A stretch of DNA of 64,000 nucleotides from assembly GCA_002269645.1 (NCBI GenBank), contig NIVC01002285.1, forward strand, positions 62,001 through 126,000, given 5' to 3'. This DNA is from Macrostomum lignano (Eukaryota). This document shows positions 7,162 through 56,500 of the stretch, in pieces. The notes under the pieces are model-generated. The model was given only the letters and a program-made list of their open reading frames with translations. It had not been told where the DNA came from and did no database searches. The number at the start of each line of letters is the position of its first letter. Positions within the stretch are counted from its first letter, which is position 1. Position numbers and translations under genes: made by a program.

Positions 7162-9428
7162 ATGCAGCAGGGACAGCGTCTTCTAGCCAGTCTGGGGCAT
7201 CGATGCAACAATCTGCTTCTGCCCGGCTCGCCGCTTGCCACTTGCCTGCCGCTCGTCATTGACGGGCACAGACTGGGCCTGGTGAAACCCGACATCGCCA
7301 GAATCCTCACCGCCAGGTGCCCATCTGTCTTCCACTACGGCTCCGGCGGCCGCTCCCTGACGCTGGCCGATGGTCTGTCTGGCTTTCGCCCGGTTAGCAA
7401 CGCCATGGCAACGGCATTTGAGCAGCTCAGAACTGACGGAGTTTTTCCCTGCCTGACTAAGGGCTGGCGAAATGAGCTGTACGCTGCCAGGCTGCGGTCT
7501 ACCAGACAGCCTGTCTTTGAGGTGCGGACAGCTGGGATGTGACTGGACTTGGGAAATGCCCAGCATCTGGCTTTACCACCGCAGGTATGCCAGGCCGAGT
7601 CTTGAGACTGACCTCTGTCCACTGGCATGGCCTCCCCAGTCTACTGACATCCCAGTCTACTGACATCCCAGTCTACTGACATCCCAGTCTACCGACACCC
7701 ATTCTACTGACACCCCAGTCTACTGACACCCCAGTCTACTGACACCCCAGTCTACCGACACCCATTCTACTGACATCCCAGCCCATGGCCACCCCAGTGT
7801 ACTGACACCCCAGTCTACTGACACCCCAGCCTACTGACACCCCAGCCTACTGACATCCCAGTCTACTGACACCCTAGTCTACTGACATCCCAGCCCATGG
7901 CCACCCCAGTGTACTGACACCCCAGTCTACTGACACCCCAGTCTACTGACACCCCAGCCTACTGACATGCCAGTCTACTGACACCCCAGTCTACTGACAT
8001 CCCAGTCTACTGACACCCCAGTCTACTGACACCCCAGTCTACTGACACCCCAGTCTACCGACACCCATTCTACTGACATCCCAGCCCATGGCCACCCCAG
8101 TGTACTGACACCCCAGCCTACTGACATCCCAGTCTACTGACACCCTAGTCTACTGACATCCCAGCCCATGGCCACCCCAGTGTACTGACACCCCAGTCTA
8201 CTGACATCCCAGTCTACTGACATCCCAGTCTACTGACATGCCAGTCTACTGACACCCCAGTCTACTGACATCCCAGTCTACTGACATCCCAGTGTACTGA
8301 CGTCCCAGTGTACTGACACCCCAGTCTACTGACACCCCAGTCTACTGACATCCCAGTGTACTGACACCCCAGTCTACTGACATGCCAGTCTACTGACAAC
8401 CCAGTCTACTGACACCCCAGTCTACCGACACCCATTCTACTGACATCCCAGCCCATGGCCACCCCAGTGTACTGACACCCCAGCCTACTGACATCCCAGT
8501 CTACTGACATCCCAGTCTACTGACATCCCAGTCTACTGACATGCCAGTGTACTGACACCCCAGTCTACTGACACCCCAGTCTACTGACATCCCAGTGTAC
8601 TGACACCCCAGTCTACTGACATGCCAGTCTACTGACAACCCAGTCTACTGACATCCCAGTCTACTGACATGCCAGTCTACTGACATCCCAGTCTACTGAC
8701 ACCCTAGTCTACTGACATCCCAGTCTACTGACATCCCAGTCTACTGACATCCCAGCCTACTGACATCCCAGTCTACTGACACCCCAGCCCTTGGCCATCC
8801 ATCCCATCCCATGGCCACCCCAGCCCAGCTAACCGGGGTCAAACGATCCTCTCCCGAACAGGTTGAGCGCAGCGCGGCCTCCCTGCTGGGCATCGCGCAG
8901 TGGGGCTGCCACGTGAACGGCTACACAGTGGCAGCGGACGGCAGCCAGCGGCCGGTTGCCATGTGGCTGGCCAGGCGGTCGCTAAGCAAGCCAACGTGGC
9001 CCGGCCACCTGGACAACCTGGTTGGCGGCGGCCTGCCCAGCGACTGCGACTCGCCAACGCTGAACGCCCGCAAGGAGGCCCAGGAGGAGGCGGGCATCCC
9101 GGCCGCGCTGCTGGACAGCCTGCAGCCAGTCGGCACCGTCAGCTACTTCTACGAAGACGAACGCGGCGTATTCCCCGACGTGGAGTACTGCTACGACTTG
9201 GCCCTGCCCGACACCTTCTCGCCTGTTAGCGTCGATGGCGAGGTGGCGGAGTTCCGCCTGGTCCCGCTGGCCGACCTGCCCGAGCTGATCGCTCAGCCGG
9301 ACTTCAAGCCGAACAGCGGCCTGGTGTGCTTGGACTTCCTGCTGCGCCGGGGCTGCCTCAGCCCGGATACGCAGCCGCTGTACGACCTGCTGATGGAGAT
9401 GTGCCATACCCGACTGCCGCTGGACTGA
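7162..9428 (+). CDS. Nudix hydrolase with N-terminal DUF4743 (YJR142W / plant NUDT20-like), 308 aa; exons 7162-7521, 8862-9428
   Basis: Phase-0 intron GAG|GTGCGG ... CTAAC...CCCGAACAG|GTT joins PVFE to VERSAASLLG. Motifs GWRNELY, GCHVNGY, MWLARRS..KPTWPG.LDNLVGGG and the Nudix box variant RKEAQEEAG are present. Confidence 0.92.
7630..8790. repeat. Intronic minisatellite, 16-bp unit CCCAGTCTACTGACAT (Nudix intron)
   Basis: About 70 tandem variant units are directly visible. Confidence 0.95.
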
Positions 9429-9994: not shown

Positions 9995-12815
9995 ATGTCT
10001 TTTCTACCAAATCTGCCGCCCTCCGTGCTGGCAAAAAATGCGGACGCCGAAGCGCTGGGCGCCAGGCGCAGCAAGGAGGAATATCGCAAGATGAAGGAGC
10101 TGGAGGAGGCCCGGAAGCTGGCGGCAGTGCCAGCCATGAAAGACGAAGAGGGCAAGGACATCAACCCGCACATACCGCAGTACATCATGCAGGCGCCCTG
10201 GTACTACGGCGCCCTTCACCCCACCCTGAAGCATCAGATTAAGCCGGCGGGCGAAGACGAGAAGCGCCAGCCGGATACGACTGCCTCAGGCGAGATCATC
10301 ACCATGGCCAGCGGCGGCAGCGAGGCCCTGAACCGCTGGTACAAGCGCGGCCAGGCCGCCGGGCCCCGGGCCACCAAGTATCGGAAGGGCGCCTGCGCCA
10401 ACTGTGGCGCCGCCACCCACCAGGCCAAGGACTGCTTCCAGCGGCCCAGGGCCCGCGGCGCCAAGTGGACTGGGGAGGACATTGCGCCAGACCAGCACGT
10501 GCAGCCGGACTTGAAGCTGGACTTCGAGGCCAAGCGGGACCGGTGGAACGGCTACGATCCGGCCAGCTACAGGCAGGTGATTGACAGCTACGCCAAGCTG
10601 GAGGAGGCCAGGAAGCAGGTGCGATCCAGCAAGCAGGAGGCCGGCGGCGAGGAGGGGGTGAGTCGCTTTGGATTGCGCATGCTGCTTTGATTTCGGGATA
10701 TCATGATAGCGCGGGTGAGGCACAGGTCTGGGGAGCACCTTTGTACTGGGAGACTAGAGATGAGTCAGGTATGTTAGAAAGACGGGATGGTATGAAGCTA
10801 GTGGGTGAGATAGAGAGATTGCGGGTGAGATCATTAGAGATAGCGGGTGAGATTATTGGAGATAGCGGGTAAGATTATCAGAGATAGCGGGTGAGATTAT
10901 TGGAGATAGCGGGTAAGATTATTAGAGATAGCGGGTGAGATTATTGGAGATAGCGGGTGAGATCATCAGAAATCGCGGGTGAGATTATCAGAGATAGCGG
11001 CTTGAGATTATCAGAGAAAGCGAGTGAGATTAAGAGAGATAACGGGTGAGCTTATCAGAGATAGCGGTTTGAGATGATCAGAGATAGTGGGTGAGATTAA
11101 GAGAGATAGGGGGTAAGATTATCAGAGATAGCAGGTGAGGTTATTGGAAATAGCGGGTGAGATTATCAGAGATAGCGGGTGAGATTATGAGATAAAGAGA
11201 CCATGCAATCCCGTGGAATTGCCCAAGCGCTTATGCTGCGAATTCTGCTTCCAGGAGCAGCGTGACGACGAAGACCGGTACGGAGACGAGATGGCGATGC
11301 CCGGGCAGAAGTTCGACTGCAAGGAGCGGCAGTCGGTGAGGAACCTGCGCATCCGGGAGGACACGGCCAAGTACCTGTACAACCTGGACCCCAGCTCGGC
11401 CTACTACGATCCCAAGACCCGAGCGATGCGAGGCAATCCTTTTGAAGGCCGCGACGTGTCCGTAGAGGAGGCCCCGTTCGCCGGCGACAATTACATCCGT
11501 TACCAAGGCGACGCGTTGCCAATGATGGAGCAGCAGGTGTTCGCCTGGGAGCTGCAGGCCGAGAAAGGCGTCGATGCGCACCTGCAGGCCAATCCGACCC
11601 GCTTGGAGCTGCTGCACCGCGAGCTGGACGAGAAAAGCAAAGAAATTGGCGGCCAGATCTCACAGCAGATCCTCGAGAAGTGAGTTGCTGTTTGCTCTTG
11701 CCTGGTCTCACCCTTCCTCTGATCTAATCTCACCCTGCTGATCCTATCTCACCCTACTCTGACCTAATCTCACCCTTCCTCTGACCAAACCCCACCCTTT
11801 CTCTGATCTAATCTCACCCTTCTGATCCTATCTCTCCCTACTCTGATCCTATCTCACCCTACTCTGATCCTATCTCTCCCTTCCTCTGACCTAAATCTCA
11901 CGCTTCCTCTGACCTAATCTTACCCTTTCTCTGATCTAATCTCACCCTGCCTCTGACCTAATCTCACCCTTCCTCTGACCAAACCCCACCCTTCCTCTGA
12001 CCAAACCCCACCCTTTCTCTGATCTAATCTCACCCTTCTGATCCTATCTCACCCTACTCTGATCCTATCTCTCCCTTCCTCTGACCTAAATCTCACGCTT
12101 CCTCTGACCTAATCTTACCCTTTCTCTGATCTAATCTCACCCTGCCTCTGACCTAAATCTTACCCTCCCTCTGACCAAACCCCACCCTTTCTCTAACCAA
12201 ATCTCATCCTCCCCCTGACCCATCTTACCTTTACTCTTACCCTTCTAAGCTCTCTCCCTCCTCACCCAATGTCACCTTTAAAAGCCTTCAAAACTCAGCT
12301 AAAATAAAAAGATGCACGCAACGCCGCACCCGCACAGGTACGGAGGCCAGGAGCACCTGCGCGCAGCGGACAGCGAGGCTCCAGAACTGTCGGCGCTGTC
12401 GCAGACTGAGCAGTACGCCGAGTACTCCCGCACTGGCACCCTGCTGCGCGGCGCCGAGGCCCCGGCGGTCCGGTCTCGCTACGACGAGGACAAAAAGCCG
12501 CTGAACCACACCAGCGTGTGGGGCTCGTACTGGGAGGCCGGCAAGTGGGGCTACAAGTGCTGCCGGTCCACCATGCGCAACGCCTACTGCACGGGATTGA
12601 AGGGCCGCCTGCCGGCCGCCGGGCCGCCGGCTGTTAAAGACTCGACCGCAGCTGCCTCCGGCTCAAAACGGGCCGCCGCTTCCAATGCTGACGACGGATC
12701 TGCGACGGCAGTTGCGGAGAAGAAGAGGAAGCAATCCGAGTCGGAGAGCGACAGTAGCAGCAGCAGCAGCGGCAGTAGCAGCAGTGACGACTCTTCTGAT
12801 TCTGATTCTGAGTGA
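9995..12815 (+). CDS. SLU7: Pre-mRNA splicing factor SLU7, 521 aa; exons 9995-10657, 11255-11679, 12338-12815
   Basis: Motifs INPHIPQYIMQAPWY, Zn knuckle CANCGAATHQAKDC, KRDRWNGYD, VRNLRIREDTAKYLYNLD, and HTSVWGSYW..GKWGYKCC. Splice sites GGG|GTGAGT to CCAG|GAG (phase 0) and GAA|GTGAGT to ACAG|G (phase 2, KYGGQEHL) are consistent. Confidence 0.97.
10802..11193. repeat. Intronic minisatellite, 22-bp unit GCGGGTGAGATTATCAGAGATA (SLU7 intron 1)
   Basis: About 18 tandem variant units. Confidence 0.93.
11705..12225. repeat. Intronic minisatellite, ~22-bp unit TAATCTCACCCTGCCTCTGACC (SLU7 intron 2)
   Basis: About 23 tandem variant units. The core is the reverse complement of the intron-1 unit core. 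Confidence 0.93.
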
Positions 12816-12884
12816 CCTGAAGACTTTGTGACTGACCGTTGAGTACTTGAATGTCGATATGAAAATACTGGCTGCATGTAAAGC

Positions 12885-13262
12885 CGCATAGCAACCACTT
12901 GACAACTGCATAGCAGCAGTACAGCAACCACTTGACAACTGTATAGCAACCAGTTGGCAACCGCATAGCAACCAGTTGGCAACCGCATAGCAACCAGTTG
13001 GCAACCGCATAGCAACCAGTTGGCAACCGCATAGCAACCAGTTGGCAACCGCATAGCAACCAGTTGACAACCACATAGCAACTGTATAGCAACTAGTTGA
13101 CAACCGCTTAGCAACCAGTTGACAACCACATAGCAACCGTATAGCAACCACTTGACAACTGTATAGCAACTAGTTGGCAACCGTATTGCAACTACTATGC
13201 ACTAGCCGCATGGCAACCGCACAGCAACCGCGTACCATATGCGTGGTATAGCAAGTGTGGCA
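12885..13262. repeat. 22-bp minisatellite GCATAGCAACCAGTTGGCAACC downstream of the SLU7 stop
   Basis: Tandem units are visible. They explain the spurious VAMRLPTGCY ORFs. Confidence 0.92.
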
Positions 13263-16570: not shown

Positions 16571-17104
16571 CATTCTGATTCCCAGCAAGGATCTTATATA
16601 TTTTATCTTTGATTTTCATTTCTTAACTCTCTTCATATTTGCCATCTACTTACATGTATTTCACTGCAACTGCGTCCATCCTTAATGGAAGTCTTTGTTT
16701 GTCTCACTTTCAGCGTGTTTTCTATAACTGCTCTTTGTACTCAGCTCAGTGTCCCCGAGTATGGTGATACACTTGATTTGCTATTTACTAGTAGTAAATT
16801 TTTCCATGTATTTTATAGGGCCAATCGAGCGCATAGCATCTGTATGCGTTTCAATTTTTATGGCCGTCTGCCATTTACCAACTTTTCCTATCTAGCCATG
16901 TGATGCCGCCTCAGCGTTATAAATGAACCAGCTAAATATAAATGCGCTTTGTGAGACAAAAACTGTACTGCACAAATTGAATATATGTACTCTGTTAAGT
17001 ACTCACGGTGTTCAATCATTGCATGATAATTACAATCAATAGGGAACAGCATTCCCTTCTGCGCAACAAGAATGTGGTCCTCTACACAATTATACACTAT
17101 CCAT

Positions 17105-17775
17105 ATCTTGTTGCACACTGTACACATCTAGTTGCACACTGTTCACATTTAGTTGCACACTGTACACATTTAGTTGCAATACTGTACACATCTAGTTGCA
17201 CACTGTACACATCTAGTTGCAATACTGTACACATCTATTTGCAATACTGTACACATTTAGTTGCAATACTGTACACATCTAGTTGCACACTGTACACATT
17301 TAGTTGCACACTGTACACATTTAGTTGCAATACTGTACACATCTAGTTGCACACTGTACACATTTAGTTGCACACTGTACACATTTAGTTGCAATACTGT
17401 ACACATTTAGTTGCACACTGTACACATCTAGTTGCAATGCTGTACACATCTAGTTGCACACTGTACACATCTAGTTGCAATGCTGTACACATCTATTTGC
17501 AATACTGTACACATTTAGTTGCAATACTGTACACATCTAGTTGTACACTGTACACATTTAGTTGCAATACTGTACACATCTTGTTGCACACTGTACACAT
17601 CTTGTTACACACTGTACACATATTGTTGCACACTGTACACATCTTGTTACACACTGTACACATCTTGTTGCACACTGCACATCTTGCACACTGTACACAT
17701 CTTGTTGCACACTGCACATCTTGCACACTGTACACATCTAGTTGCACACTGCGCATCTTGCACACTGTACACATG
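17105..17775. repeat. 21-bp minisatellite CTGTACACATCTAGTTGCACA
   Basis: Tandem units. They explain the spurious HCTHLVA ORFs. Confidence 0.93.
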
Positions 17776-19539: not shown

Positions 19540-20345
19540 CCTCCGATATCAGCCTTGGCGCCCACAATACCCGCCTTGGTCTTGGCGCCGCCGATATCAG
19601 CCTTGGCGCTCCCAATATCGGTCTTGTCAATTCGACCTGGACGCCGCGATATCAACCTTGGCGCCCCTAGATTCAACCTTGGCGCCCCTAGATTCAACCT
19701 TGGCACCCTAGATTCGACCTTGGCGCCCCTAGATTCAACCTTGGCGCCCCTAGATTCAACCTTGGCGCCCCTAGATTCAACCTTGGCACCCTAGATTCAA
19801 CCTTGGCACCCTAGATTCAACCTTGGCACCCTAGATTCAACCTTGGCGCCCTTATATTCGACCTTGGCACCCCTAGATTCGACCTTGGCGCCCCTAGATT
19901 CAACCTTGGCACCCTAGATTCAACCTTGGCACCCTAGATTCAACCTTGGCACCCTAGATTCAACCTTGGCGCCCTTATATTCGACCTTGGCACCCCTAGA
20001 TTCGACCTTGGCGCCCCGATATCAACCTTTGCGCCCCGATATCAACCTTGGCGCCCTTATATTCGACCTTGGTGCCCCTAGATTCAACCTTGGCGCCCTT
20101 AGATTCGACCTTGGTGCCCCTAGATTCAACCTTGGCGCCCTTATATTCGACCTTGGCGCCCCTAGATTCAACCTTGGCGCCCCGATATCAACCTTGGCGC
20201 CCCGATATCAACCTTGTCGCCCTTAGATTCGACCTTGGCACCCCTTATCAACCTTGGCGCCCCTAGATTCAACCTTGGCACCCCTAGATTCAACCTTGGC
20301 GCCCCTAGATTCAACCTTGGCGCCCCTAGATCCAATCTTGGCGTC
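19540..20345. repeat. 21-bp minisatellite AACCTTGGCGCCCCTAGATTC
   Basis: About 36 tandem variant units. Confidence 0.93.
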
Positions 20346-21292
20346 CCCGGCATGGCTTCAGTTACAATTTCGGCGCTGTTACACATGTAAAAGCAGGTGG
20401 GTTTGCCCGCCACCCCATTTGCCTTATAAATAAAAGGCTAATAAGCGGCTCAATTAGTCAGCAGGCAAAATAATTTTAGAGAAAATTTGCCAAGTTCGCA
20501 ACAAATTGCAGTTCCAGCCCGTACTCCCCCAAGCAATAACTGCAAAGAAGACTTGGATTTCGGATGGTTTTGCTGGTAGTTGTTGGCCCAATGTGGCCCA
20601 ATAGGCTATTCTATTTATGCAATGCTGTGCCACACTAACTTAACCCCGCCCCGAACCTTAAGTGTTCAGCTTAATGCCTTGCTTCTAGTCGGGTTGTTGG
20701 CGAGGCGGTGGAAAGACAGACAGATTACACTTGGGCATTAAAGGAGGGGTTTAACCCGGCTTGGCGAGACTAAAGCCTTTCTCGTCTGGGGTTCTGTAAT
20801 ATGCAATGTACATAGCTGGGGGAGAGAAGTGTGAGCGTCTGGACCTGCAAAGACCCCAAGCGAAGGACCAGACAGGGGAGTAGGTAGAGAGGAGGGAAGG
20901 AGAAATGTACAGTGGGGCTTCATTTTCAACAGCCCCCCCCTGTCACCCCGCTGTCCGTCCGTCCCCTCTCTCCCCTCGGGGTTGGGCTTGGAGACAAACC
21001 GTTCATGTATAGAATAATGCGGTGGCTTCGGCTATCTTTTTAGCTGACTGCTTTTGATCCTTCAAAGAGTTGTGCTTGCTTGCCCTGTGCCTTCAAGCAA
21101 AGAACTGCCTCTGCCTACCCGGACTGCCCTCAGTCCCGTTTTCCCGCGTTTCTTCTGGCTTTTCGGGCAGCAGGCCGGGACAAAAGCCTCATAAAGCATA
21201 TTTTCCAAGGGGATTCCAGGAAAGCAAGAAGAGGTGCGACGCGGTCTGCTGACTTGCTGCTTTGACAGCCTTCTCTGTGGTGGCTAGCGAGC

Positions 21293-24200
21293 ATGAGGTA
21301 ATTCCTGCGAATATTGCTGCTCCGTACGCTTACGACTTACCTATATTCACAACCCAATGTCAAGCTTGGCGCCCCACATGTCAATATTGACGCCCCACAT
21401 GTCAATCTTGGCGCGCCGCATGTCAATCTTGGCGACCCACATGTCAATATTGGCGCCCCACATGTCAATCTTAGCTCCCCGTGTCAATCTTGGCGCCCTT
21501 ATGTCAATCTTGGCGCTCTCATATCAATATTGACGCCCTCATGCCAGTCTTGGCCCCCTCGTATCAATATTGGCGCCCCACATGTCAATCTTGGCGCCCC
21601 CGTGTCAATCTTGGCGCCCTCATGTCAATATTGGCGCCCTCATGTCAATCTTGGCGCCCTCATGTTAATCTTGGCGCCCTCATGTCAGTCTTGGCCCCCT
21701 CGTATCAATATTGGCGCCCCGTGTCAATCTTGGCGCCCTCATGTCAATCTTGGCGCCCCTCACGTCAATCTTGGCGCTCCTCATATTAATCTTGGCGCTC
21801 TCATGTCTTGGCGCCCTCATGTCAGTCTTGGCGCCCTCGTATCAATATTGGCGCTTCACATTTCAATTTGGCACCCCACATGTCAATCTTGGCGCCCCGT
21901 GTCAATCTTGGCGCCCTTATGTCAATCTTGGCGCCCTCATGTTAATCTTGGCGCCTTCATGTCAGTCTTGGCCCCCTCGTATCAATATTGGCGCGCCACA
22001 TGTCAATCTTGGCGCCCCACGTGTCAATCTTGGCGCCCTCATGTCAATCTTGGCGCTCCTCATATTAATCTTGGCGCCCTCATGTCAGTCTTGGCGCTCC
22101 TCATATCTTGGCGCCCTCATGTCAATCTTGGTGCCCTCATGTCAGTCTTGGCGCCCCCATATCAATCTTGGCGCCCTCATGTCAATCTTGGCGCCCCGCC
22201 CCTCCAGCGACCTGCAGTCCTCGCAGCCGACTTCGTCAACCCGACGTCGAGCAACCCCGCCGGAGCCGCCGACGCCGCTGGAGGCCGCCCTATCGGCTGG
22301 CGCGGCCGACGCCGAGCTGGAACGCCTGCTCGACCGTCGCGATGAATTCGGCGACGACGCCCTGACCGAGGAAGTTGAACGCGCTGACACCGAGGCCGAC
22401 GCCGCCGTTCTGTCGCTGCTGACCCGACCGCGCCTCGCCGAGCGCTGCTGGCAGCCCGCGCTGTTCGCTGCCGCCCGCTGCGGCCGCTCCGGCCTGCTGC
22501 AGCGCCTGCGGGATGCCGACCCCGCCGCCTGGCGCAGGGCGGTTCGCTCAGCGGGTCCTGATGGTCGCCGGGTGCTGCACCACGCTGCCGCAGGCGGAAG
22601 GGTGGAGGCCATGCTTCGGCTTCTGCGGATGCTGCGAATGCATCATCATCAGCAGCAACAGCCGGAAGCTGCGATGGATGACGCCGGCGCCGAGGAAGAA
22701 GCTCCTGATGAGGCTGAGGAAGCTGCGGATGGAGCTGATGAAAAGCGGCGAGCCGAAAAAAATTTAGAGCAGGAGGCGGAGGTGAGTGCGCTGCATCGGC
22801 ATTCGATGGCTACTTGTTGTTGTCGGAAAGGCTGCGGGGTGTCAGGAGAGGTAGCAGGATGTCAGGAGAGGTAGCAGGATGTCAGGAGATGTAGCAGGAT
22901 GTCACGAGAGGTAGTAGGATGTCAGGAGATGTAGCAGGATGTCAAGAGAGGTAGCAGGATGTCATGAGAGGTAGCAGGATGTCAGGAGAGGTAGCAGGAT
23001 GTCAGGAGAGGTAGTATAGGATGTCAGGAGAGGTAGTATAGGATGTCAGGAGAGGTAGCAAGATGTCAGGAGAGGTAGCAGGATGTCAGGAGAGGTAGCA
23101 GGATGTCAGGAGAGGTAGCAGGATGTCAGGAGAGGTAGCAGGATGTCAGGAGAGGTAGTAGGATGTCAGAGGAAAAGATCAGCGCATTTCTACACGCCCT
23201 CAATCCCCAGGCCCTGGACACCGAAGAGGACTTCGCCGAGCTGGTGTACGCGGTGGACTGCCGCGGCCGCACCTTCCTGTCCGAGCTGGCTGACCTGCAC
23301 CCGCAGGCGCTGCCGGAGCTGTGGCCGGCGGAGCTGCCAGGCGGGCTGGCCCGCGTGCTGGAGCTGCTGGACCCGCCGCTGCAGGGCCTGACGGACCTGC
23401 CGGATCGCCAGGCCGCCCTGGAGACGGTGGCCATCGCCCAGGAGCCGGTGAAGCGAATCGTGCGCAGCCTGTCCGACCTGCCAGACGGCGAGCGGTCGGA
23501 CGCGGCGAGGCAGCTGGTGCGGCTGTCGCAGTCGGCCTCGTCGCCGAAGCTGCTGCCGGCGCTACTGCGGCTCGGCCTGGTGCGTCCGGCCGACTGCGAG
23601 CAGAGCTTCGTGCTGGAGCTGGTGAAGGCCGGCTGGCTGACCGCCGCCTCCCAGCTGATGCGCCTGCAGCAGACCCGCCTGGTCGAGACCTGCGTTGCCG
23701 TGGCCGCCGCCTGCGGCTCCGCGCGGCCGCTCGAGCAGCCCCGGCCGCGCCCAGCAGCCACCCCGGGCGGCCTGGCCGCCTCGGCCGGGCGCTGGCTGAA
23801 GAGCGGCGAGCAGGCTGGGGACGACGCCAGCGTGGACAGCGGCGCCAGCAACCGCGAGCGCCTCCGTCGGGAGGCCGTCACTGTGGCGCTGAACGCCCTG
23901 GACGCCGTCTATTCCGGCGCCGACGGGCACTGGAAGGCGCGCGTTCACCGGCACTTCTTCAGCGGTGGAGGCGGCGCCGGCGCCCTGGCACTCGCTGATG
24001 CAGCCCCGGAGCTGCTGGCGGCGCCTGCGCTGGCAGAGTACGCCGACCGGCGCTGGGCGGACGGCCCGGACGCCGCGGCCGGCTGTCTGGGCTTCGGCAG
24101 TCCGGCCGGCGGGCCGCCGCGGTTCTCGCCGAGGACGAAGCACGCGGCCCGCCTGCTGAGCCTCCTGCTGTTCCAGCTGCTGCTGACGGTGCAGGCGGCC

Positions 24201-40809: not shown

Positions 40810-42087
40810 GTCACAGAGCTCATTTGTAGGTCACATTTCTCCTGGTGGAACAATGTTGCTTGAAGCAGGTGGACGTCCTGCTGGCATTTTGTCCTTGCTG
40901 AAATGCGTTTTTACGTGTCAAATATTTTAGAGCGGTAAACTGGAAGATCGCCCTTCGTACGTCTACATGTATACGGACAGGCGTGCCTACGAGCATATAG
41001 CGTGCCTATATGCGCGCTACAGATGATATACAAAGTAAAAGTACAGCATTTTATATGTAATGTAAGGGTCTGCATCAACTTGACAGATCCGACAGTCAGC
41101 CTACATTGACGTGGCTTATTGAATCAAGTAATCTCTTTACGAAAGGGCGTTCTCAAAGCAGACTTGAGGCTGATTCTCGTCCAAATCCAAGCGGCTTTTC
41201 AGCTCGCAAGAGTAACCCACTTAAGAGGGTTTTTCACAAAGCGAAACTTTAAAAAGACAAATACAGCAGAAAAAATGAGTGCTTTGCAGTTCGTGAAAAA
41301 TCAAGAACCCGTCTATGATTGTTTACGCATAGATAGCGGAGCGGAGAAGGCAAAAAAGTTTTTTCTGACGTCTGCACGCGCGTGCCTTCTTGCCGTTCTT
41401 CGCGCACTTCATTAGCAATTCGACCATCGTTAGGGAGGTCAAACAAGAAGAAGATTTCGATTGTAGACAGCATGAGACCCTTTGATCCTCATGAGATTTT
41501 TATCCTCAGATTGCTCTGTACTGACTGTAGCTGTCTGCAGTGTCTGCCTTCATTTCTGCTGATATTGATTTGTCTTACAGTGTCTGCAAGCACGGATCCA
41601 GCCTGCACTGCACCGTTCAAAGGCACACGCCCCAGACACAGCTAGTATTGGCGGTATTGCTGATGAAAAATGATCAAAGCAAGCGACTTCAGCTGTCCTG
41701 TCAGATTAATTTGCATGCTCAAGCATGCTGTTTGATTCCTACTACTGCAGCAACGTGAAAGATATCGGCAGTGTCAGGCGGAATAAGAGTTCGGCGGAAT
41801 TCTCCTGGCCTCAGCAGATAAGACTCCGGGCCAGCATCCATCTGCATTTCACATCAAAGGCGACACTTGGGACAGCCAATGAAATTACATGTTGCAACGC
41901 AGACATACGAGTGCGAGCATCAAGTGGAAAGCAGCCGTTGAGATCTTCAGCTCGTGCTCAGACGTTCGCGTCAGTAATAAGGATAATTTCTTGAGAGGCC
42001 GATCGCGTGATTACTCCCAGGCTTGATCGCCTCGGGAGGCGTCGCAGAGTCTTGGGTAAGCCGAGCGCTTGTTGAAAAATTTGTTCA

Positions 42088-43941
42088 TGCAAAAGATGTA
42101 CCGGTATGTAACCAATGCAACCATCTTCACCGTTGCTCATGCTAAAGATGTACCGGTATGTAACCAATGCAACCATCTTCACCGTTGCTCATGCTAAAGA
42201 TGTACCGGTATGTAACCAATGCAACCATCTTCACCGTTGCTCATGCTAAAGATGTACCGGTATTTAACCAATGCAACCATCTTCACCATTGCTCATGCTA
42301 AAGATGTACCGGTATTTAACCAATGCAACCATCTTCACCGTTGCTCATGCTAAAGATGTACCGGTATGTAACCAATGCAACCATCTTCACCGTTGCTCAT
42401 GCTAAATATGTACCGGTATGTAACCAATGCAACCATCTTCACCGTTGCTCATGCTAAAGATGTACCGGTATGTAACCAATGCAACCATCTTCACCATTGC
42501 TCATGCAAAAGATGTACCGGTATGTAACCAATGCAACCATCTTCACCGTTGCTCATGCTAAATATGTACCGGTATGTAACCAATGCAACCATCTTAACCG
42601 TTGCTCATGCTAAAGATGTACCGGTATGTAACCAATGCAACCATCTTAACCGTTGCTCATGCAAAAGATGTACCGGTATGTAACCAATGCAACCATCTTC
42701 ACCGTTGCTCATGCTAAAGATGTACCGGTATGTAACCAATGCAACCATCTTCACCGTTGCTCATGCTAAAGATGTACCGGTATTTAACCAATGCAACCAT
42801 CTTCACCATTGCTCATGCTAAAGATGTACCGGTATGTAACCAATGCAACCATCTTCACCGTTGCTCATGCTAAAGATGTACCGGTATGTAACCAATGCAA
42901 CCATCTTCACCGTTGCTCATGCTAAAGATGTACCGGTATGTAACCAATGCAACCATCTTCACCGTTGCTCATGCTAAAGATGTACCGGTATGTAACCAAT
43001 GCAACCATTTTCACCGTTGCTCATGCTAAATATGTACCGGTATGTAACCAATGCAACCATCTTCACCGTTGCTCATGCTAAAGATGTACCGGTATTTAAC
43101 CAATGCAACCATCTTCACCGTTGCTCATGCTAAAGATGTACCGGTATGTAACCAATGCAACCATCTTCACCGTTGCTCATGCTAAAGATGTACCGGTATT
43201 TAACCAATGCAACCATCTTCACCGTTGCTCATGCTAAAGATGTACCGGTATGTAACCAATGCAACCATCTTCACCGTTGCTCATGCTAAATATGTACCGG
43301 TATGTAACCAATGCAACCATCTTCACCGTTGCTCATGCTAAATATGTACCGGTATGTAACCAATGCAACCATCTTCACCGTTGCTCATGCTAAAGATGTA
43401 CCGGTATGTAACCAATGCAACCATCTTCACCGTTGCTCATGCTAAAGATGTACCGGTATGTAACCAATGCAACCATCTTCACCGTTGCTCATGCTAAAGA
43501 TGTACCGGTATGTAACCAATGCAACCATCTTCACCGTTGCTCATGCTAAAGATGTACCGGTATTTAACCAATGCAACCATCTTCACCGTTGCTCATGCTA
43601 AAGATGTACCGGTATGTAACCAATGCAACCATCTTCACCGTTGCTCATGCTAAAGATGTACCGGTATGTAACCAATGCAACCATCTTCACCGTTGCTCAT
43701 GCTAAAGATGTACCGGTATGTAACCAATGCAACCATCTTCACCGTTGCTCATGCTAAAGATGTACCGGTATTTAACCAATGCAACCATCTTCACCGTTGC
43801 TCATGCTAAAGATGTACCGGTATGTAACCAATGCAACCATCTTCACCGTTGCTCATGCTAAAGATGTACCGGTATGTAACCAATGCAACCATCACCGTTG
43901 CTCATGCTAAAGATGTACCGGTATTTAACCAATGCAACCAA
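42088..43941. repeat. 52-bp tandem repeat, about 35 very homogeneous copies
   Basis: Unit AAAGATGTACCGGTATGTAACCAATGCAACCATCTTCACCGTTGCTCATGCT, head to tail with no spacers. Confidence 0.97.
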
Positions 43942-44940: not shown

Positions 44941-47888
44941 ATGCTGCCGCTGCCGATCATCGCTGAGATGCAGAACTGCAGCTCAGTTGGCAACTACAGC
45001 TGGGCCCACTGCCCGCAGCCGCTGGACTTTGAGGTATCGCTGACCTTTAAATGACCTCCAGTCTGATCTATAGGAACAAATTCATAAAATTACGCAACAC
45101 GGCCTTGCTATGTACACTTGTGCTCTGTGCTGACTTTGTCAAGAAAGTAAATAGAAGAGGGGGAAAAGAGGAGAGAGAAGAGAGGACAGAAGAAGGGAGA
45201 AAAGAAGAGAAAAAGAGGAGAGAAAAGAGGAGTCAAGAGGAGAGAGAAAAGGGGAGAGAAGAGGGGAGAGAAGAGGGGAGAGAGGAGGGGAGAGAAGAGG
45301 AGAGAGAAGAGGGGAGAGAAGAGGAGAGAGAAAAGGGGAGAGAAGAGGGGAGAGAAGAGGGGAGAGAAGAGGGATGAGAAGAGGGCAGAGAAGAGGGGAG
45401 AGAAGAGGGGAGAGAAGAGGGGAGAGAAGAGGGGAGAGAAGATGGATGAGAAGAGGGCAGAGAAGAGGGGAGAGAAGAGGGGAGAGAAGAGGGGAGAGAA
45501 GATGGATGAGAAGAGGGCAGAGAAGAGGGGAGAGAAGAGGGGAGAGAAGAGGGGAGAGAAGAGGGGAGAGAAGAGGAGAGAGAAGAGGAGAGAGAAGAGG
45601 GGAGAGAAGAGGAGAGAGAAGGGGGGAGAGAAGAGGAGAGAGAAGGGGAGAGAGAAGAGGGCAGAGAAGAGGGGGGAGAAGAGGGGAGAGAAGAGGGGAG
45701 AGAAGAGGGGAGAGAAGAGGGGAGAGAAGAGGTGAGAGAAGAGGACAAAGAAGAGGGGACAGAGATTCGGAATTCCCATTTAGCAGCAAGTTGACGATTC
45801 GGCCATAGACATCAGGACAAAGAAGGATGCCAGCTGCAGCCCCATTCCATAGAAATCAGGCTTAAGCATCGACTTCCATGCAGTAAAGATCAGAATTATT
45901 AACGTGGTTGCTTTTTTCCCGTCTGCAGCAAAATGGGATCTCAAGTCTAATCAGGGCAAGCATAAAAGCCTGAAAGCAAACACACTTCCGGTGTGCTCCA
46001 TTTGAGTAGTTCGGCTCGCCCGTGTATCAGGGCGATAGAGATCAGTGCCAACCCGTAAAATTTGCATTTGGATGTCAATTCTTCTCTGGGCAATCAGAAA
46101 AGCGTAAAAGAAAAATAAAATCATAATTCTCAAGCTTGGAAAGAGGGACACCTTGCATTAGCATGAGGTGACTTTGCTGTTTTCAGTCAGTTGTTCAATC
46201 GTAAGTCATTCACCTCATCCCCATTCGCGACCCACAATAGGCTTGCCTGATGCTGCCCCTCACCCTGCTGGCTCTGTCGCTGAACTCGTGGGCGCTGGCC
46301 ATCTTCAAGCGTCACATCTCCGCCAACAGCACCATGCTGCTCTGGATCTGCAGCCTCTGCACCTGCGAGATCTGCCTGAACACCTGCCTGATGGCGCACT
46401 TCATTTTTTACCTGGCCGCCCGACCTTGCGACGAGTTTCCGCACTACAGCGCCGACCCGGCAACCGTTGCCATGTTTCACCTGGGCGGCGTCGTGCAGAC
46501 CCTGGCCCTTGCCGCGCTGCTCTTCCGCAACTGGACGTTTGCCGCTCTCGCCCTCGTCCGATTCGAGGCGGTGCTGCGCGTTACCAGCCGGCGCCTTTTA
46601 AACCGACGTCGCAGCCTGCTTTTGATGGTTGCCATGGCAATAATCGGCCTCGGCGTGAGCGCGGTGCGCGCTCTCCGCACGAAAGCTGTGTACTGCGACG
46701 AAGAGGGCAGCGGCCAAGCTGTGGTCCTGCCGCACCTGTACCAAAGTCCGTGGTTCTTCTATTTCGAGGCGCATTTCTGCGGCCTCCTGCAGACCATCGT
46801 CCCGCTGCTCTGCGTCATTGGGCTTTCTGGCGCCGCCGCCATCCGCCTGGTGTCTCGACAGCGGGCCAACACGCGCGCTGGCCTGCGCCGCCACCCGCAT
46901 CAGAGATCGGTAGGCTTGAGTGAAGATCAGAGGGCTTGAGTGAAGATCAGAGGGCTTGAGTGAAGAGCAGAGGGCTTGAGTGAAGATCAGAGGGCTTGAG
47001 TGAAGAGCAGAGGGCTTGAGTGAAGAGCAGAGATCGGTAGGCTTGAGTGAAGAGCAGAGGGCTTGAGTGATGAGCAGAGATCGGTAGGCTTGAGTGAAGA
47101 GCAGAGGGCTTGAGTGATGAGCAGAGATCGGTAGGCTTGAGTGAAGAGCAGAGATCGGTAGGCTTGAGTGAAGGTCAGAGATCGGTAGGCTTGAGTGAAG
47201 ATCAGAGATCGGTAGGCTTGAGTGAAGAGCAGAGATCGGTAGGCTTGAGTGAAGAGCAGAGATCGGTAGGCTTGAGTGAAGAGCAGAGATCGGTAGGCTT
47301 GAGTGAAGATCAGAGATCGGTAGGCTTGAGTGAAGAGCAGAGATCGGTAGGCTTGAGTGAAGCCCTGATTCCGGCTCGTAATCCTAGAGTTTTTCATGAC
47401 CCCTTAATGTCCAGTCAGCTACGTCAGCTTCTGCTGCACTTCAAGAGGATCTGGACAACTCAGACGGCCAGGACAGTTCAGATCGAGTTTACGTCCTGGT
47501 TGTCTACCTGTGCGTGATCTTCCTGATCTGCGAGCTGCCAGTGGTTGTACTGTACAACCTTGAGCACTTTGCTGAGATGGGCGGCAACCTGTTCTGGGTC
47601 AGCAATGTCTGCATCGTGGCTGACTCGGTGCTCAACTTTTTGGGCTACGTGGTGACAAACAGCCAGTTCAGGCGGCACCTGCTCTGCGGCGGCCTGCGAG
47701 ACCACCGGCCAGGGGGTCAACTGCGCCTGCCCCCGGCGATACTCATGGCGGCGGGGGGCGACTCCCTCAGCGCCGCCTTCTCATCCCGCGGTCGCCGCAG
47801 CCGTCCCAGAGACGCGATCGTGCTGGACGCGGCGGCAGCGACAGCAGCAAAGGAGCTGCGCGATGACCGATCTTTGAATGATATTTAG
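44941..47888 (+). CDS. Class A (rhodopsin-like) peptide GPCR, FMRFamide-receptor-like, 411 aa; exons 44941-45033, 46241-46909, 47415-47888
   Basis: N-terminal exon with NCS/NYS sequons; seven TM segments; TM3 RNWTFAALALVRFEAV (DRY variant), TM6 FLICELP, TM7 ADSVLNFLGY. Both introns are phase 0 (GAG|GTATCG to AATAG|GCT; TCG|GTAGGC to GTCCAG|TCA). AATAAA at 48070. The exon-1 link is inferred. Confidence 0.85.
45155..45760. repeat. 12-bp polypurine repeat GAAGAGGGGAGA (GPCR intron 1)
   Basis: Almost purely purine plus strand over about 600 bp. Confidence 0.95.
46900..47360. repeat. 27-bp minisatellite AGATCGGTAGGCTTGAGTGAAGAGCAG spanning the GPCR exon-2 donor site
   Basis: The first unit contains the functional 5' splice site. 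Truncated ~20-bp units are interspersed near the start. Confidence 0.93.
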
Positions 47889-53555: not shown

Positions 53556-56500
53556 ATGCTTACAGTAGAAAAAAGGAGGACGCGCCAAAGGGAATTTCGT
53601 GGGCCGGAGCCCAACAGCGTTGGAATTGTAAGTGAATAAATATCTTAATTTTTTCTCTTACATCTATAAGTATGTATAGTGTGTGATATAAAATTTTAAA
53701 AATCAAATACTAATACTGTGTTTATAATACAGTGATGTGATGACACATATAAACCCAATAGTTTCGGCAAAATGAATAGAACAAGAAACGTCTACGACTG
53801 TAACTACAAAAGCCTTGGATAATGCGAAGTACAAGATAACCCATTTTTAACATTATTTAAAAAAGAAAATTAATGGGCGAACTCTAATGAAAAATACGCG
53901 TCAATTGTTATTGTGTTAATGTTATGCTTAAATCAGAGTTGAAATTTATTGTTTTAAATTAAGATAAAAGTTATAAATTATAAAAAGTTATAAATGCAAA
54001 CTTTTGAAGTTTTAAACATTTATAAAGCCTTTCTTCTTTTCACTCATTAAAACGAGCAATTTTGAAGGCCATACAAATGCTGGAAAACAAATTCAAAGTA
54101 GCTTTACCTCCACTTTCAAGAAAGTTTTAGTGTATTCTAATCTCTAAATAAAAATCAGAATGCTGTTTCTTTCTGAATTATATAGTGTCTCTAAATCAAG
54201 ACTTTATAACTTTCAAATTTTTGAAGAGATGGCTAATAAAGTACAGAATATATTGTTTTAAATGTCTAATATATGGGACTATTAGCGAAAATTGTTTTAT
54301 GGTTTTTAATACTTATAAATTTATAAGAACATAAAATAAACATTTTTTACTCAACGAAACAAAATTTGTATTACAAGTAAACAAAAATTTATAACCCCAA
54401 ACGCATAAAAGAGCAGCGAATAGATAATTAATTGTCGATTAAAACATGTCTTGAAATCAAGCGAAGTTGTTCTAATTAAAAGCGAAGAAGAATGAAGCGG
54501 TTCTTTCACTATCGAATTCTTTGAGGAATCGCTGCTCACAGTCATGTCCAAAGCAAATTAAAAGAATTCGAAAATTCGCCTGAAACGGCAGGATTAAAAC
54601 AAATCCATCTATTTTCGTAGCTGGGCCGAACACCGGGCAGCGGCGGCGGCGACTGGATCATCCAACAGAGCCGGGAGGAGGCCGCCCGCCGGGCGGAGAG
54701 GGACGCCGAGGTCCGCGCCCAGGCCCTCATGGACATGCGCAGCGACTGGGAGCAGCAGACCAACAAGCGGCTGCAGCGCAAGGCCGTCAACCGCCGGCTG
54801 CAGGAGTACCGGCGCCAGATGGAGATGCGCATCGAGGAGCGCCGGGACCGACTGCGCGCCCTGCTGGAGGCTGACGAGCGGCGCCACCTGGAGGAGATGG
54901 ACGCCAGCCAGGAGACGGTGCTGGAGCGCCAGGCCAAGATGCGCGAGCGGGCCAAGCAGCTCAGGGAGGAGAAAGAGGCGGAGCGGCAGCAGCTGGTTGA
55001 GCAGAAGATGAACGAGCTGTGGCGGGAGCAGAGCGAGGAGCTGCGCACCAACCTGCAGAAGCGGCACCTGGCGGAGGTCATCGCCGAGCGGGACAATCAG
55101 GTGACCGTCTTAGCAAGCTCCAACTGTCTTACCCACCAACTGTCTCACCCGCCAACTGTCTCACTCACTAACTGTCTCACCCACCAACTGTCTCACCCAC
55201 CAACTGTCTCACCCACCAACTGTCTCACCCACCAACTGTCTCACCCGACAACTGTCTCACCCACCAACTGTCTCACCCGCCAACTGTCTCACCCACTAAC
55301 TGTCTCACCCACCAACTGTCTCACCCACCAACTGTCTCACCCACCAACTGTCTCACCCACCAACTGTCTCACCCACCAACTGTCTCACCCGCCAACTGTC
55401 TCACCCACCAACTGTCTCACCCGCCAACTGTCTCACCCACTAACTGTCTCACCCACCAACTGTCTCACCCACCAACTGTCTCACCCACCAACTGTCTCAC
55501 CCACCAACTGTCTCACCCACTAACTGTCTCACCCACCAACTGTCTCACCCACCAACTGTCTCACCCACCAACTGTCTCACCCACCAACTGTCTCACCCGC
55601 CAACTGTCTCACCCACCAACTGTCTCACCCACCAACTGTCTCACCGCCATCGCATCCGCAGGTGCACCTGAAGAAGCGCCTGGAGGCGCAGCGCCAGGCA
55701 GAGGAGCGCTATTTTCACGAGCTGTGGAAGGACGAGCTGGCAGCCAAGGCGGAGCGTGAGGAGCGGGACCTGGCGGAGCGCAAGCAGCGCGAGATGGAGA
55801 CGGTGGCGGTGCTGGAGCAACAGCGGGCCGCCTTCAAGGCCAGACGCGACGAGGAGCTCAAGCTGAAGGAGGAGGAGGCTCAGCTGGTCCGCGAGATGGA
55901 GGAGCTCCGAAAGGTGAGCAGGGTTGCACAGCTCACCAGCCCCAAGTCAGCCCAGGTTTCTCCCGGAGCATTTCCCAGGGAAAAACACTGACTCGAACCC
56001 GCAGGTGGAGGCGGCTCAGGCGGCTGAGGAGCGGCGCCGCAAGGAGCAGGAGACTCGCCGGATGCTGGACCGCAACATCCGCCTGCGGATGCGCCAGAAG
56101 GCCCGCGAGGCCCAGGAGGAGCTGGCCTTCGACATGAAGATCCTCGAGCAGCTGGCCGAGGAGAGCCGCGTGGAGGAGGCCAACACCCGGGCCAGGAAGC
56201 TGGCGATGAGGGAGGAGGACCGCAGATACCGCGAGTACCTGCGCAACATGATGGAGGAGGAGAAGGCCAGGTGGGTTTCCCTGGAATTAGTCTCACACTC
56301 CAGCATCTGTCTCACGAATTCCGCAGTCACTCACCGATCCCGCACGGTCACTCACCAATCCCGCACAGTCACTCACCAATCCCGCACAGTCACTCACCAA
56401 TCCCGCACAGTCACTCACCAATCCCGCACAGTCACTCACCGATCCCGCACTCTCAACGATCCCGCACACTCAACATTCCCGCACACTCACCAATCCCGCA

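Follow-up and report, generated by a model that had tools for sequence, protein, structure and literature searches.

Exon 2 of the SLU7 gene of the flatworm Macrostomum lignano lies between two intronic 22-nt minisatellites that are related in inverted orientation and are predicted to pair with each other across the exon. The arrays and the way they are related and oriented, the gene model, the copy-number variation and the thermodynamic prediction were all obtained directly; on this basis we consider that this is probably (roughly 0.55) a neutral, fast-changing minisatellite pair that recreates a circRNA-promoting geometry, with minor exon 2 circRNA and/or exon-skipped by-products as the most likely outcome. 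The arrays would be two descendants of one 22-bp minisatellite, lying inversely in the old introns on either side of exon 2. In a pre-mRNA that still contains both introns, they could pair imperfectly over ~300 bp, with one 11-bp and one 6-7-bp helix per 22-nt unit, and this duplex would bring the 3′ splice site of intron 1 to the 5′ splice site of intron 2 around exon 2. The resulting minor circular RNA and/or minor skipped mRNA would be by-products rather than parts of an established regulatory circuit.

The SLU7 locus and its genomic copies

The locus belongs to Macrostomum lignano Mlig_3_7 (contig NIVC01002285.1) and lies within the 64-kb stretch of DNA that was analyzed as a whole, hereafter the window. 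The gene has three exons coding for 521 aa, and its identity as SLU7, proposed by the sequence-only reading, was borne out by a Pfam Slu7 (PF11708) match with E = 3.6e-89 and full-length profile coverage. This match spans residues 175-426, exon 1 ends at residue 221, and a CCHC zinc knuckle (CANCGAATHQAKDC motif) is readable in the translation of exon 1. Over its 521 aa, the product matches the SLU7 part of UniRef model P0001 with 100% identity, the exons match loci encoding NCBI protein P0121/PAA58561.1, and exon 2 is included in all four M. lignano protein models compared for SLU7. A protein search with full-length SLU7 gave no match from read-archive assemblies, and the Rfam and tRNA scans across the window gave no matches. 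The features of the locus are the following:

9995..10657, + strand: SLU7 coding exon 1, with its ATG at 9995 (translation in frame with exons 2 and 3)
10658..11254, + strand: intron 1, 597 nt, GT...AG, 66% taken up by array 1 (splice sites read directly)
10799..11192, + strand: array 1, a 22-nt minisatellite, 17.9 copies, 81% matches (Tandem Repeats Finder)
11177..11735, + strand: predicted closing part of the duplex, 11177-11187 (GGGUGAGAUUA) with 11725-11735 (UAAUCUCACCC) (MFE structure)
11255..11679, + strand: SLU7 exon 2, 425 nt, encoding the core of the Slu7 domain
11680..12337, + strand: intron 2, 658 nt, GT...AG, 81% taken up by array 2 (splice sites read directly)
11706..12241, + strand: array 2, a 22-nt minisatellite, 24.9 copies, 79% matches, unit TCTCACCCTTCCTCTGACCTAA (Tandem Repeats Finder)
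12338..12815, + strand: SLU7 exon 3, the last coding exon, with its stop at 12813-12815

The proposed limits of exon 2 also held, as canonical splice sites flank both of its edges (AG at 11253-11254 and GT at 11680-11681).

Three near-identical genomic copies of the locus were found on separate contigs, all with the inverted array pair. Assembly redundancy is documented for M. lignano (PMC5730564); because the arrangement repeats on three separate assembly contigs, the pair is not an assembly artifact. The exons are 98.8-100% identical across the three copies, exon 2 being identical in copy L001 and carrying five synonymous differences in copy L002. The arrays vary in copy number (17.9, 17.9 and 24.3 for array 1; 24.9, 32.9 and 23.9 for array 2), and such differences among near-identical loci are typical of unconstrained minisatellites. 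As the three copies are only ~1% diverged, their agreement is uninformative on long-term conservation. A candidate diverged paralog (P0002, 86% identity) proved to be SLU7 itself with frameshift errors of an older assembly and gives no comparison. The search for SLU7 homologs returned no other Macrostomum species, the next matches being tapeworms (~57% protein identity) and flukes (~53%).

The inverted arrays and their predicted pairing

Both arrays are minisatellites by their head-to-tail units in the 10-100-bp range, imperfect copies and variable copy number. Array 1 has the Tandem Repeats Finder consensus TAGCGGGTGAGATTATCAGAGA and the unit GGGTGAGATTATCAGAGATAGC; its sense strand is 69% purine, its units are in register, and it contains 15 GGTRAG and 26 YAG motifs. 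Array 2 is 76% pyrimidine, lacks both AG and GT dinucleotides and shows a higher-order period of 195 nt (Tandem Repeats Finder). Read as its reverse complement, array 2 shows homology to array 1 in a common 11-mer plus TCAGAG: the reverse complement of its unit, GGGTGAGATTAGATCAGAGAAA, aligns with the array 1 unit as GGGTGAGATTA--TCAGAGATAGC. The 11-mer GGGTGAGATTA occurs seven times on the + strand, always in array 1, and seven times on the - strand, always in array 2, with no further copy in the 64 kb outside the two arrays. Aligned without gaps, the two arms show 70-79% complementarity in inverted orientation. Between array 1 and exon 2 lie 62 nt, and between exon 2 and array 2 another 26 nt. 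The sequence-only reading had described inverted arrays of one 22-nt period with a common 11-nt core, set ~60 nt before and ~25 nt after exon 2 and bracketing it from both flanking introns, a description that agrees with the two measured periods of 22, the core counts, the distances and an innermost predicted pair that encloses the exon.

The window holds ~28 distinct tandem arrays, almost every intron there having its own minisatellite, and the commonest array period is 20-23 nt, so that a common period of 22 says little by itself. The arrays were compared through 29 consensus units (the units at 46913 and 47013 overlap, leaving 28 distinct arrays), and among the 406 inverted comparisons the SLU7 pair scored 28, where the next best scored 15. 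A window-wide inverted-repeat scan (arms of at least 24 nt, spacing of at most 4 kb) found 26 pairs, 25 of them listed, and at least 20 of these come from the SLU7 arrays. SLU7 is thus the only strong inverted array pair of the window, in line with the claim that no other gene there had such a complementary pair. Given the orientation, the chance that two random cyclic 22-mers share an 11-mer is ~22*22/4^11 = 1.2e-4. Related neighboring arrays are common in the window, but in direct orientation, which suggests that the local spawning of related arrays is general here. The related arrays at 19652/21357, considered as a second inverted pair, were rejected, being direct-oriented with no exon-like GC peak between them. 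Other short inverted pairs in the window may be the ends of small transposons.

Folding of the 10658-12337 pre-mRNA segment gave an MFE of -619.7 kcal/mol with 300 inter-array pairs (152 AU, 135 GC and 13 GU; 296 expected in the ensemble), and the three genomic copies fold alike (300, 316 and 364 inter-array base pairs). The innermost predicted pair, 11203-11703, closes a 500-nt loop that holds exon 2 and both its splice sites, and in the ensemble 11150-11254 and 11680-11790 are expected to share 44 pairs. Self-fold energies are low (-76.5 kcal/mol for array 1 and -10.5 kcal/mol for array 2), leaving little competing self-structure; array 1 self-pairs are absent from the MFE structure, and pairing across the exon is predicted on thermodynamic grounds to outcompete pairing within the introns. 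The suggested pairing in register over about 400 nt was recovered in part: it is largely in register, but it is interrupted and covers 300 of the 394 nt of array 1, and its perfect helices never exceed 11 bp.

Dinucleotide shuffling of array 2 gave -513 ± 8.7 kcal/mol, ~107 kcal/mol short of the real fold (z ~ -12), and inter-array pairing was greater than in any of 32 substitutions with other arrays of the window, which is not the outcome that the earlier reading had named as refuting it, a duplex energy no better than for random pairs. Fifteen helices of at least 8 bp were found in the real fold, against 2-6 in the shuffles. About two thirds of the energy gain is compositional, a purine-rich array facing a pyrimidine-rich one: shuffled array 2 still pairs with ~254 nt of array 1, and the unrelated array 55120-55645, substituted in its place, gives -594 against -620 kcal/mol with 262 nt paired.

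Possible consequences for splicing

Inverted Alu pairs flank circularized exons in primates. Reverse-complementary matches promote back-splicing and exon skipping, 13 nt being enough in C. elegans zip-2 (PMC8330042), and short reverse-complementary intronic matches flanking circularized exons are also described elsewhere (PMC8938519). SLU7 resembles these cases, as complementary sequences lie in both introns flanking exon 2 (seven copies of the 11-mer per array, 300 predicted pairs), upstream and downstream of it and close to its splice sites, and are predicted to pair across it; the imperfect duplex of ~300 nt is also like an inverted Alu pair in size. In contrast to Alu pairs or zip-2, the SLU7 arms are neither unique sequence nor dispersed retroposons; they are locally generated tandem minisatellites whose helices of 11 bp and 6 bp recur periodically, and they vary in length from one gene copy to another. 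In addition, the introns around exon 2 are short, and a back-spliced or skipped product is a prediction here. The locus could plausibly be an instance of a mechanism already known, and we infer from the fold and the layout that the duplex may form in vivo and may affect splicing.

Circularized exons are usually, though not obligatorily, flanked by long introns. At 597 and 658 nt, the introns around SLU7 exon 2 both fall below the M. lignano mean of 1.1 kb (PMC5730564), and if splicing is fast and co-transcriptional, intron 1 may already be gone when array 2 is transcribed. It is possible, although we hold it unlikely, that the arrays are inert bystanders in introns spliced before any duplex forms, with circRNA, skipping and editing no higher than background. 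The short introns would fit this, as would the short and interrupted helices (at most 11 bp), the free drift of array copy number among genomic copies and the presence of exon 2 in every annotated protein model compared. However, with just 26 nt of intron 2 ahead of it and a self-structure of -10.5 kcal/mol, array 2 should be free to pair once made, and in C. elegans much shorter complementary stretches are effective (PMC8330042). A literature search found no paper on circular RNAs of M. lignano.

Skipping of exon 2 would produce the frameshifted isoform that had been suggested, as 425 is not a multiple of 3, with a stop 23 codons into exon 3 and a shortened protein retaining roughly the first quarter of the Slu7 domain and no more. 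The idea that this isoform would be unproductive through junction-dependent decay did not stand: because the stop lies in the last exon, and not upstream of the last exon junction as in AS-NMD, the skipped mRNA is not a classic junction-dependent NMD target, while NMD by 3′ UTR length may still apply. The duplex had also been put forward as an ADAR or siRNA substrate. ADAR editing is plausible, since planarian flatworms have ADARs (PMC8797187). The siRNA part of the proposal is weakened, because a duplex whose perfect helices are at most 11 bp would be a poor Dicer substrate.

Autoregulatory unproductive splicing, through poison exons and AS-NMD, is known in SR and hnRNP genes. SLU7 is likewise a splicing factor whose alternative product would be frameshifted; unlike those genes, it has no conserved regulatory element, and the premature stop would lie in the last exon. 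A selected switch, by which SLU7 as a second-step splicing factor regulates itself via a 425-nt circRNA or a frameshifted skip isoform, seems to us improbable, as does the related idea that copy-variable intronic minisatellites are tunable clamps and the SLU7 pair a selected self-limiting one, with array length setting the output per gene copy. The geometry and the predicted duplex are as such a switch would have them, the host gene encodes a splicing factor, skipping would shift the frame and truncate the Slu7 domain, and the pair is kept in all three gene copies. Yet junction-dependent NMD would not apply, the non-pairing positions of the array 1 unit (ATAGC) are conserved to the same degree as the pairing core, and the array copy numbers vary among gene copies, which at ~1% divergence are silent on long-term conservation; the closest relatives for comparison are the tapeworms and flukes, at ~57% and ~53% protein identity.

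Origin of the arrays and their genomic setting

The position of intron 1 is within 1 aa of an intron of Schistosoma mansoni SLU7. In the coral Pocillopora verrucosa, an intron lies only 1 nt from the mRNA position of intron 2; at that position, no intron was found in SLU7 of S. mansoni or Lingula. The introns being at old positions, the arrays are secondary and arrived later. A new-intron or introner origin of intron 2 was rejected on the coral intron, despite the absence of one in S. mansoni and Lingula. An inverted segmental duplication including the unique flanks was also rejected, because the unique flanks of introns 1 and 2 show no similarity, direct or inverted (p = 0.17-0.83).

In foldback transposons, the terminal inverted repeats consist of short subrepeats in tandem and vary in length. 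The SLU7 locus resembles them in having two inverted short-unit arrays of variable copy number around a central segment, and the window holds further short inverted pairs that might come from transposons. The arrays could be arms of such a mobile element, or have come from an inverted segmental duplication, instead of local re-seeding, an origin compatible with the other explanations but in our view improbable. A foldback element would combine inverted arrays with target-site duplications and be dispensable to the host gene; at SLU7 what lies in the center is a conserved coding exon of the host, with an old intron on each side; neither a target-site duplication nor similarity of the flanks in either orientation was detected, and the array unit occurs nowhere else in the 64 kb. 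Chance, or a by-product of a purine-rich array lying beside a pyrimidine-rich one, is a very improbable source of the complementarity: the pairing kept by shuffled array 2 and by the 55120 array and the commonness of 20-23-nt periods would favor it, but the exact 11-mer and TCAGAG stand at nearly the same offset in both arrays, with seven perfect copies in each and none elsewhere (~1e-4 even before the second block is counted), and both the inverted alignment score and the number of long helices exceed those of all the comparisons.

The reading as a neutral minisatellite pair places the arrays among the ordinary intronic minisatellites of M. lignano (~26 others in the window). They share with these the size of the unit, the imperfection of its copies, the presence of higher-order periods and differences in copy number between copies; what sets the SLU7 pair apart is that no other pair in the window shows inverted homology around an exon. 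Should the duplex form, it would represent an exon-looping intron pairing built of tandem minisatellites instead of dispersed repeats, of which a limited literature search found no earlier case. In a genome with 15% simple and tandem repeats (PMC5730564), where most introns hold a private minisatellite, there may be many such pairs. As M. lignano is amenable to transgenesis (PMC5730564), the arrays could be deleted or resized to relate repeat length to circRNA or skip yield. The strength of the duplex, if formed, would follow array copy number and thereby provide a natural allelic series, in which the three gene copies already differ.

Minisatellites flanking SLU7 exon 2 and their genomic copies

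The SLU7 gene and its two intronic arrays comprise the following features:

9995-10657, + strand: SLU7 exon 1
10799-11192, + strand: array 1 in intron 1 (tandem-repeat search: period 22, 17.9 copies, 81% matches; unit started at the core, GGGTGAGATTATCAGAGATAGC)
11255-11679, + strand: SLU7 exon 2
11706-12241, + strand: array 2 in intron 2 (period 22, 24.9 copies, 79% matches, higher-order period of 195 nt; unit TCTCACCCTTCCTCTGACCTAA)
12338-12815, + strand: SLU7 exon 3, the last exon

When joined, the exons encode 521 aa, which match the Pfam Slu7 profile over its full length (E = 3.6e-89) and show 100% identity to SLU7 of Macrostomum lignano. The sequence-only reading had placed exon 2 and its 425-nt length correctly, along with the array distances (62 nt before the exon and 26 nt after it). 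Exon 2 was included in all four M. lignano SLU7 protein models compared. An apparent 86% paralog, P0002, was rejected, being the same SLU7 gene carrying frameshift errors from an older assembly.

The reverse complement of the array 2 unit is GGGTGAGATTAG[A/G]TCAGAG[A/G]AA and has two stretches in common with array 1, the 11-mer GGGTGAGATTA and, offset by 2 nt, the block TCAGAG; the proposed reverse-complementary arrays of ~22 nt, with an 11-nt core and a second block, were thus recovered, both with period 22. All seven + strand occurrences of the exact 11-mer fall in array 1 and all seven − strand occurrences in array 2; the rest of the 64 kb has none. Array 1 is 69% purine (GC skew about +0.6) and fills 66% of intron 1 (597 nt), while array 2 is 76% pyrimidine (GC skew about -0.75) and fills 81% of intron 2 (658 nt). 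Homology ends at the array edges; no similarity was found between the unique intron flanks in either orientation. In array 1, conservation is as high at the non-pairing positions (ATAGC) as in the pairing core.

The 29 array consensus units of the window were compared pairwise in both orientations. Arrays 1 and 2 formed the best inverted pair (score 28; runner-up 15), in line with the earlier remark that no other such complementary pair occurs in the window, and an inverted-repeat scan of the whole window returned 26 pairs, at least 20 of them from the SLU7 array locus. Their score falls within the range of the direct neighbor pairs 46913/47013, 19652/21357, 58727/59734, and 15054/15391 (named by array starts). 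Related adjacent arrays are therefore common here, arrays 1 and 2 being the only inverted case. A common period says little by itself, since 20-23 nt is the commonest in the window. The inverted pair around the SLU7 exon is real, and chance does not account for it.

The 521-aa protein (PAA58561.1, PAA59225.1, PAA60308.1) is coded on three contigs of GCA_002269645.1, with exon identities of 98.8-100%, only synonymous differences, and identical SLU7 proteins. Such copies are in keeping with the redundancy known for the DV1 assembly, which stems from extra chromosomes (PMC5730564). Locus L003 places the window at NIVC01002285.1:62001-126000. All three loci carry the inverted pair in differing sizes, so it is no assembly artefact and its arrays turn over rapidly; on long-term constraint, copies this young are uninformative.

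Intron lengths and array copy numbers in the three SLU7 loci
Window (L003, 5995-16815): intron 1, 597 nt; intron 2, 658 nt; array 1, 17.9 copies; array 2, 24.9 copies
L001: intron 1, 595 nt; intron 2, 832 nt; array 1, 17.9 copies; array 2, 32.9 copies
L002: intron 1, 736 nt; intron 2, 635 nt; array 1, 24.3 copies; array 2, 23.9 copies

A NUDIX-SLU7(-ESCO) locus is found on each contig (L001 4001-6993, L002 4001-6937, window 9995-12815). Between 7000 and 15800 of the window, a NUDIX gene (stop near 9428), SLU7 (9995-12815), and an ESCO-type acetyltransferase gene (from about 14517) are closely spaced on the + strand, and UniRef models fuse NUDIX with SLU7. Polycistronic trans-spliced units are known in M. 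lignano (PMC5730564), so a single primary transcript may cover all three genes.

Intron 1, which follows residue 221, sits no more than one residue from an intron of Schistosoma mansoni in the alignment; for intron 2 (codon K363, ILE-K-YGG), neither S. mansoni nor Lingula has an equivalent. In the coral Pocillopora verrucosa, an intron separates VLEK from YGG, 1 nt from intron 2 in the mRNA; window 11679/12338 and coral 6010/6178 (L006) have an identical mRNA context (GAGAAGTA), in phase 2 and phase 0, respectively. Either an intron slid by one base, or this site gained an intron more than once. From these alignments, both introns are probably old and were colonized by the arrays later, which counts against mobile-element insertion as a recent source of the introns.

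Predicted duplex and fold controls

The segment 10658-12337 (1680 nt) folded with a minimum free energy of -619.7 kcal/mol, compared with -314.6 kcal/mol in total when the two introns and the exon were folded separately. In the predicted fold, 300 of the 394 nucleotides of array 1 pair with array 2 (152 AU, 135 GC, and 13 GU, in 55 helices), with two helices from a typical unit, of 11 bp (GGGUGAGAUUA with UAAUCUCACCC) and of 6-7 bp (UCAGAG with CUCUGA). Register is kept through the whole of array 1, as anticipated for about 400 nt, while the longer array 2 bulges out 48, 16, 16, and 14 nt. Exon 2 and both its splice sites lie in a 500-nt loop, closed by 11203-11703 as the innermost pair. The partition function gave 296 expected inter-array pairs, the paired bases of array 1 all being partnered in array 2, and the other two SLU7 copies folded alike (316 and 364 pairs).

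Dinucleotide-shuffled versions of array 2 still reached -513 ± 8.7 kcal/mol, with ~254 nt of array 1 paired, so that the specific sequence adds ~107 kcal/mol (z about -12) and about two thirds of the predicted energy gain is due to purine-rich versus pyrimidine-rich composition. Helices of at least 8 bp numbered 15 in the native fold and 2-6 in shuffles. Array 2 was also exchanged for 32 pieces of matching length from the other arrays of the window, none of which exceeded the native 300 nt of inter-array pairing. The nearest substitute came from the unrelated array 55120-55645 (-594.3 kcal/mol, 262 nt paired), a 16-nt array (CCAACTGTCTCACCCA) having TCTCACCC in common with array 2. In all-against-all duplex predictions with 260-nt pieces, the native pair (-206.6) lay ~2 SD below the mean (-101.5 ± 53.8), and several G-rich/C-rich pairs outdid it (best, -253.7). 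The predicted duplex is hence better than for random minisatellite pairs, as the sequence-only reading supposed, but its margin over other arrays is small.

Possible consequences for splicing

Complementary matches in flanking introns promote back-splicing and skipping, 13 nt being enough in C. elegans zip-2 (PMC8330042), and are also ADAR targets (PMC8938519); ADARs are present in planarian flatworms (PMC8797187). The geometry of the SLU7 pair fits these cases: it is a known circular-RNA-promoting architecture, but made from unusual building material, homologous minisatellites. We found no paper on circular RNA in M. lignano.

With exon 2 skipped, a stop would be met 23 codons into exon 3; the predicted protein, 244 aa long, would lack all but roughly the first quarter of the Slu7 domain. 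As this stop lies in the last exon, junction-dependent NMD would not act on the product, which weakens the suggested unproductive splicing. The suggested siRNA substrate is weakened as well, since perfect helices in the predicted fold reach only 11 bp and Dicer products are thus unlikely. Prompt linear splicing is favored by the shortness of both introns relative to the mean of 1.1 kb for the species (PMC5730564). Together with the conserved ATAGC and copy-number drift, these points weaken a regulatory role. We favor, at a probability of roughly 0.55, a neutral arrangement that would yield at most minor back-splice or skip by-products. That the pair is inert is the next most likely reading, a distinctly less probable one. 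A selected autoregulatory switch, which the flanking geometry would allow, is possible but unsupported and very improbable.

The sense strand of array 1 contains 15 GGTRAG motifs resembling 5′ splice sites and 26 YAG motifs; these decoy sites would be masked if paired with array 2. The 536 nt of array 2 contain no AG or GT dinucleotide on the sense strand and 33 branch point-like CTRAY motifs.

Other repeats of the window

The M. lignano genome is saturated with intronic minisatellites, and the window holds ~28 distinct arrays (1-64000), with periods clustering at 16 and 20-23 nt and most C-rich on the + strand. Its exons are GC-rich (65-75%), each intervening intron being largely one private array. 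A third period-22 array of unrelated sequence (AGCAACCAGTTGGCAACCGCAT) lies at 12884-13192, ~70 nt past the SLU7 stop codon, and shares CTAGTTGC in inverted orientation with array 17094-17774. Arrays 19652-20348 (period 21) and 21357-22196 (period 20), ~1 kb apart, share CTTGGCGCCC in direct orientation, with no exon-like GC peak between them. The 24-nt unit at 2496-2559 (GGCGAAGGATGGGGCAGGAGATGG) includes GGGCAGGAG, which we take to resemble the classical human minisatellite core. Two very homogeneous arrays, 455-1256 (176 bp × 4.6 copies, 99% matches) and 42081-43940 (52 bp × 35.8 copies, 97%), seem of far more recent origin than the SLU7 arrays, with their matches of about 80%. Lastly, the short inverted pairs 3017-3055/4265-4303 (39 nt, 85% complementary, 1.2 kb apart) and 34347-34370/35054-35077 (24 nt, 96% complementary, 0.7 kb apart) could be terminal inverted repeats of small DNA transposons.
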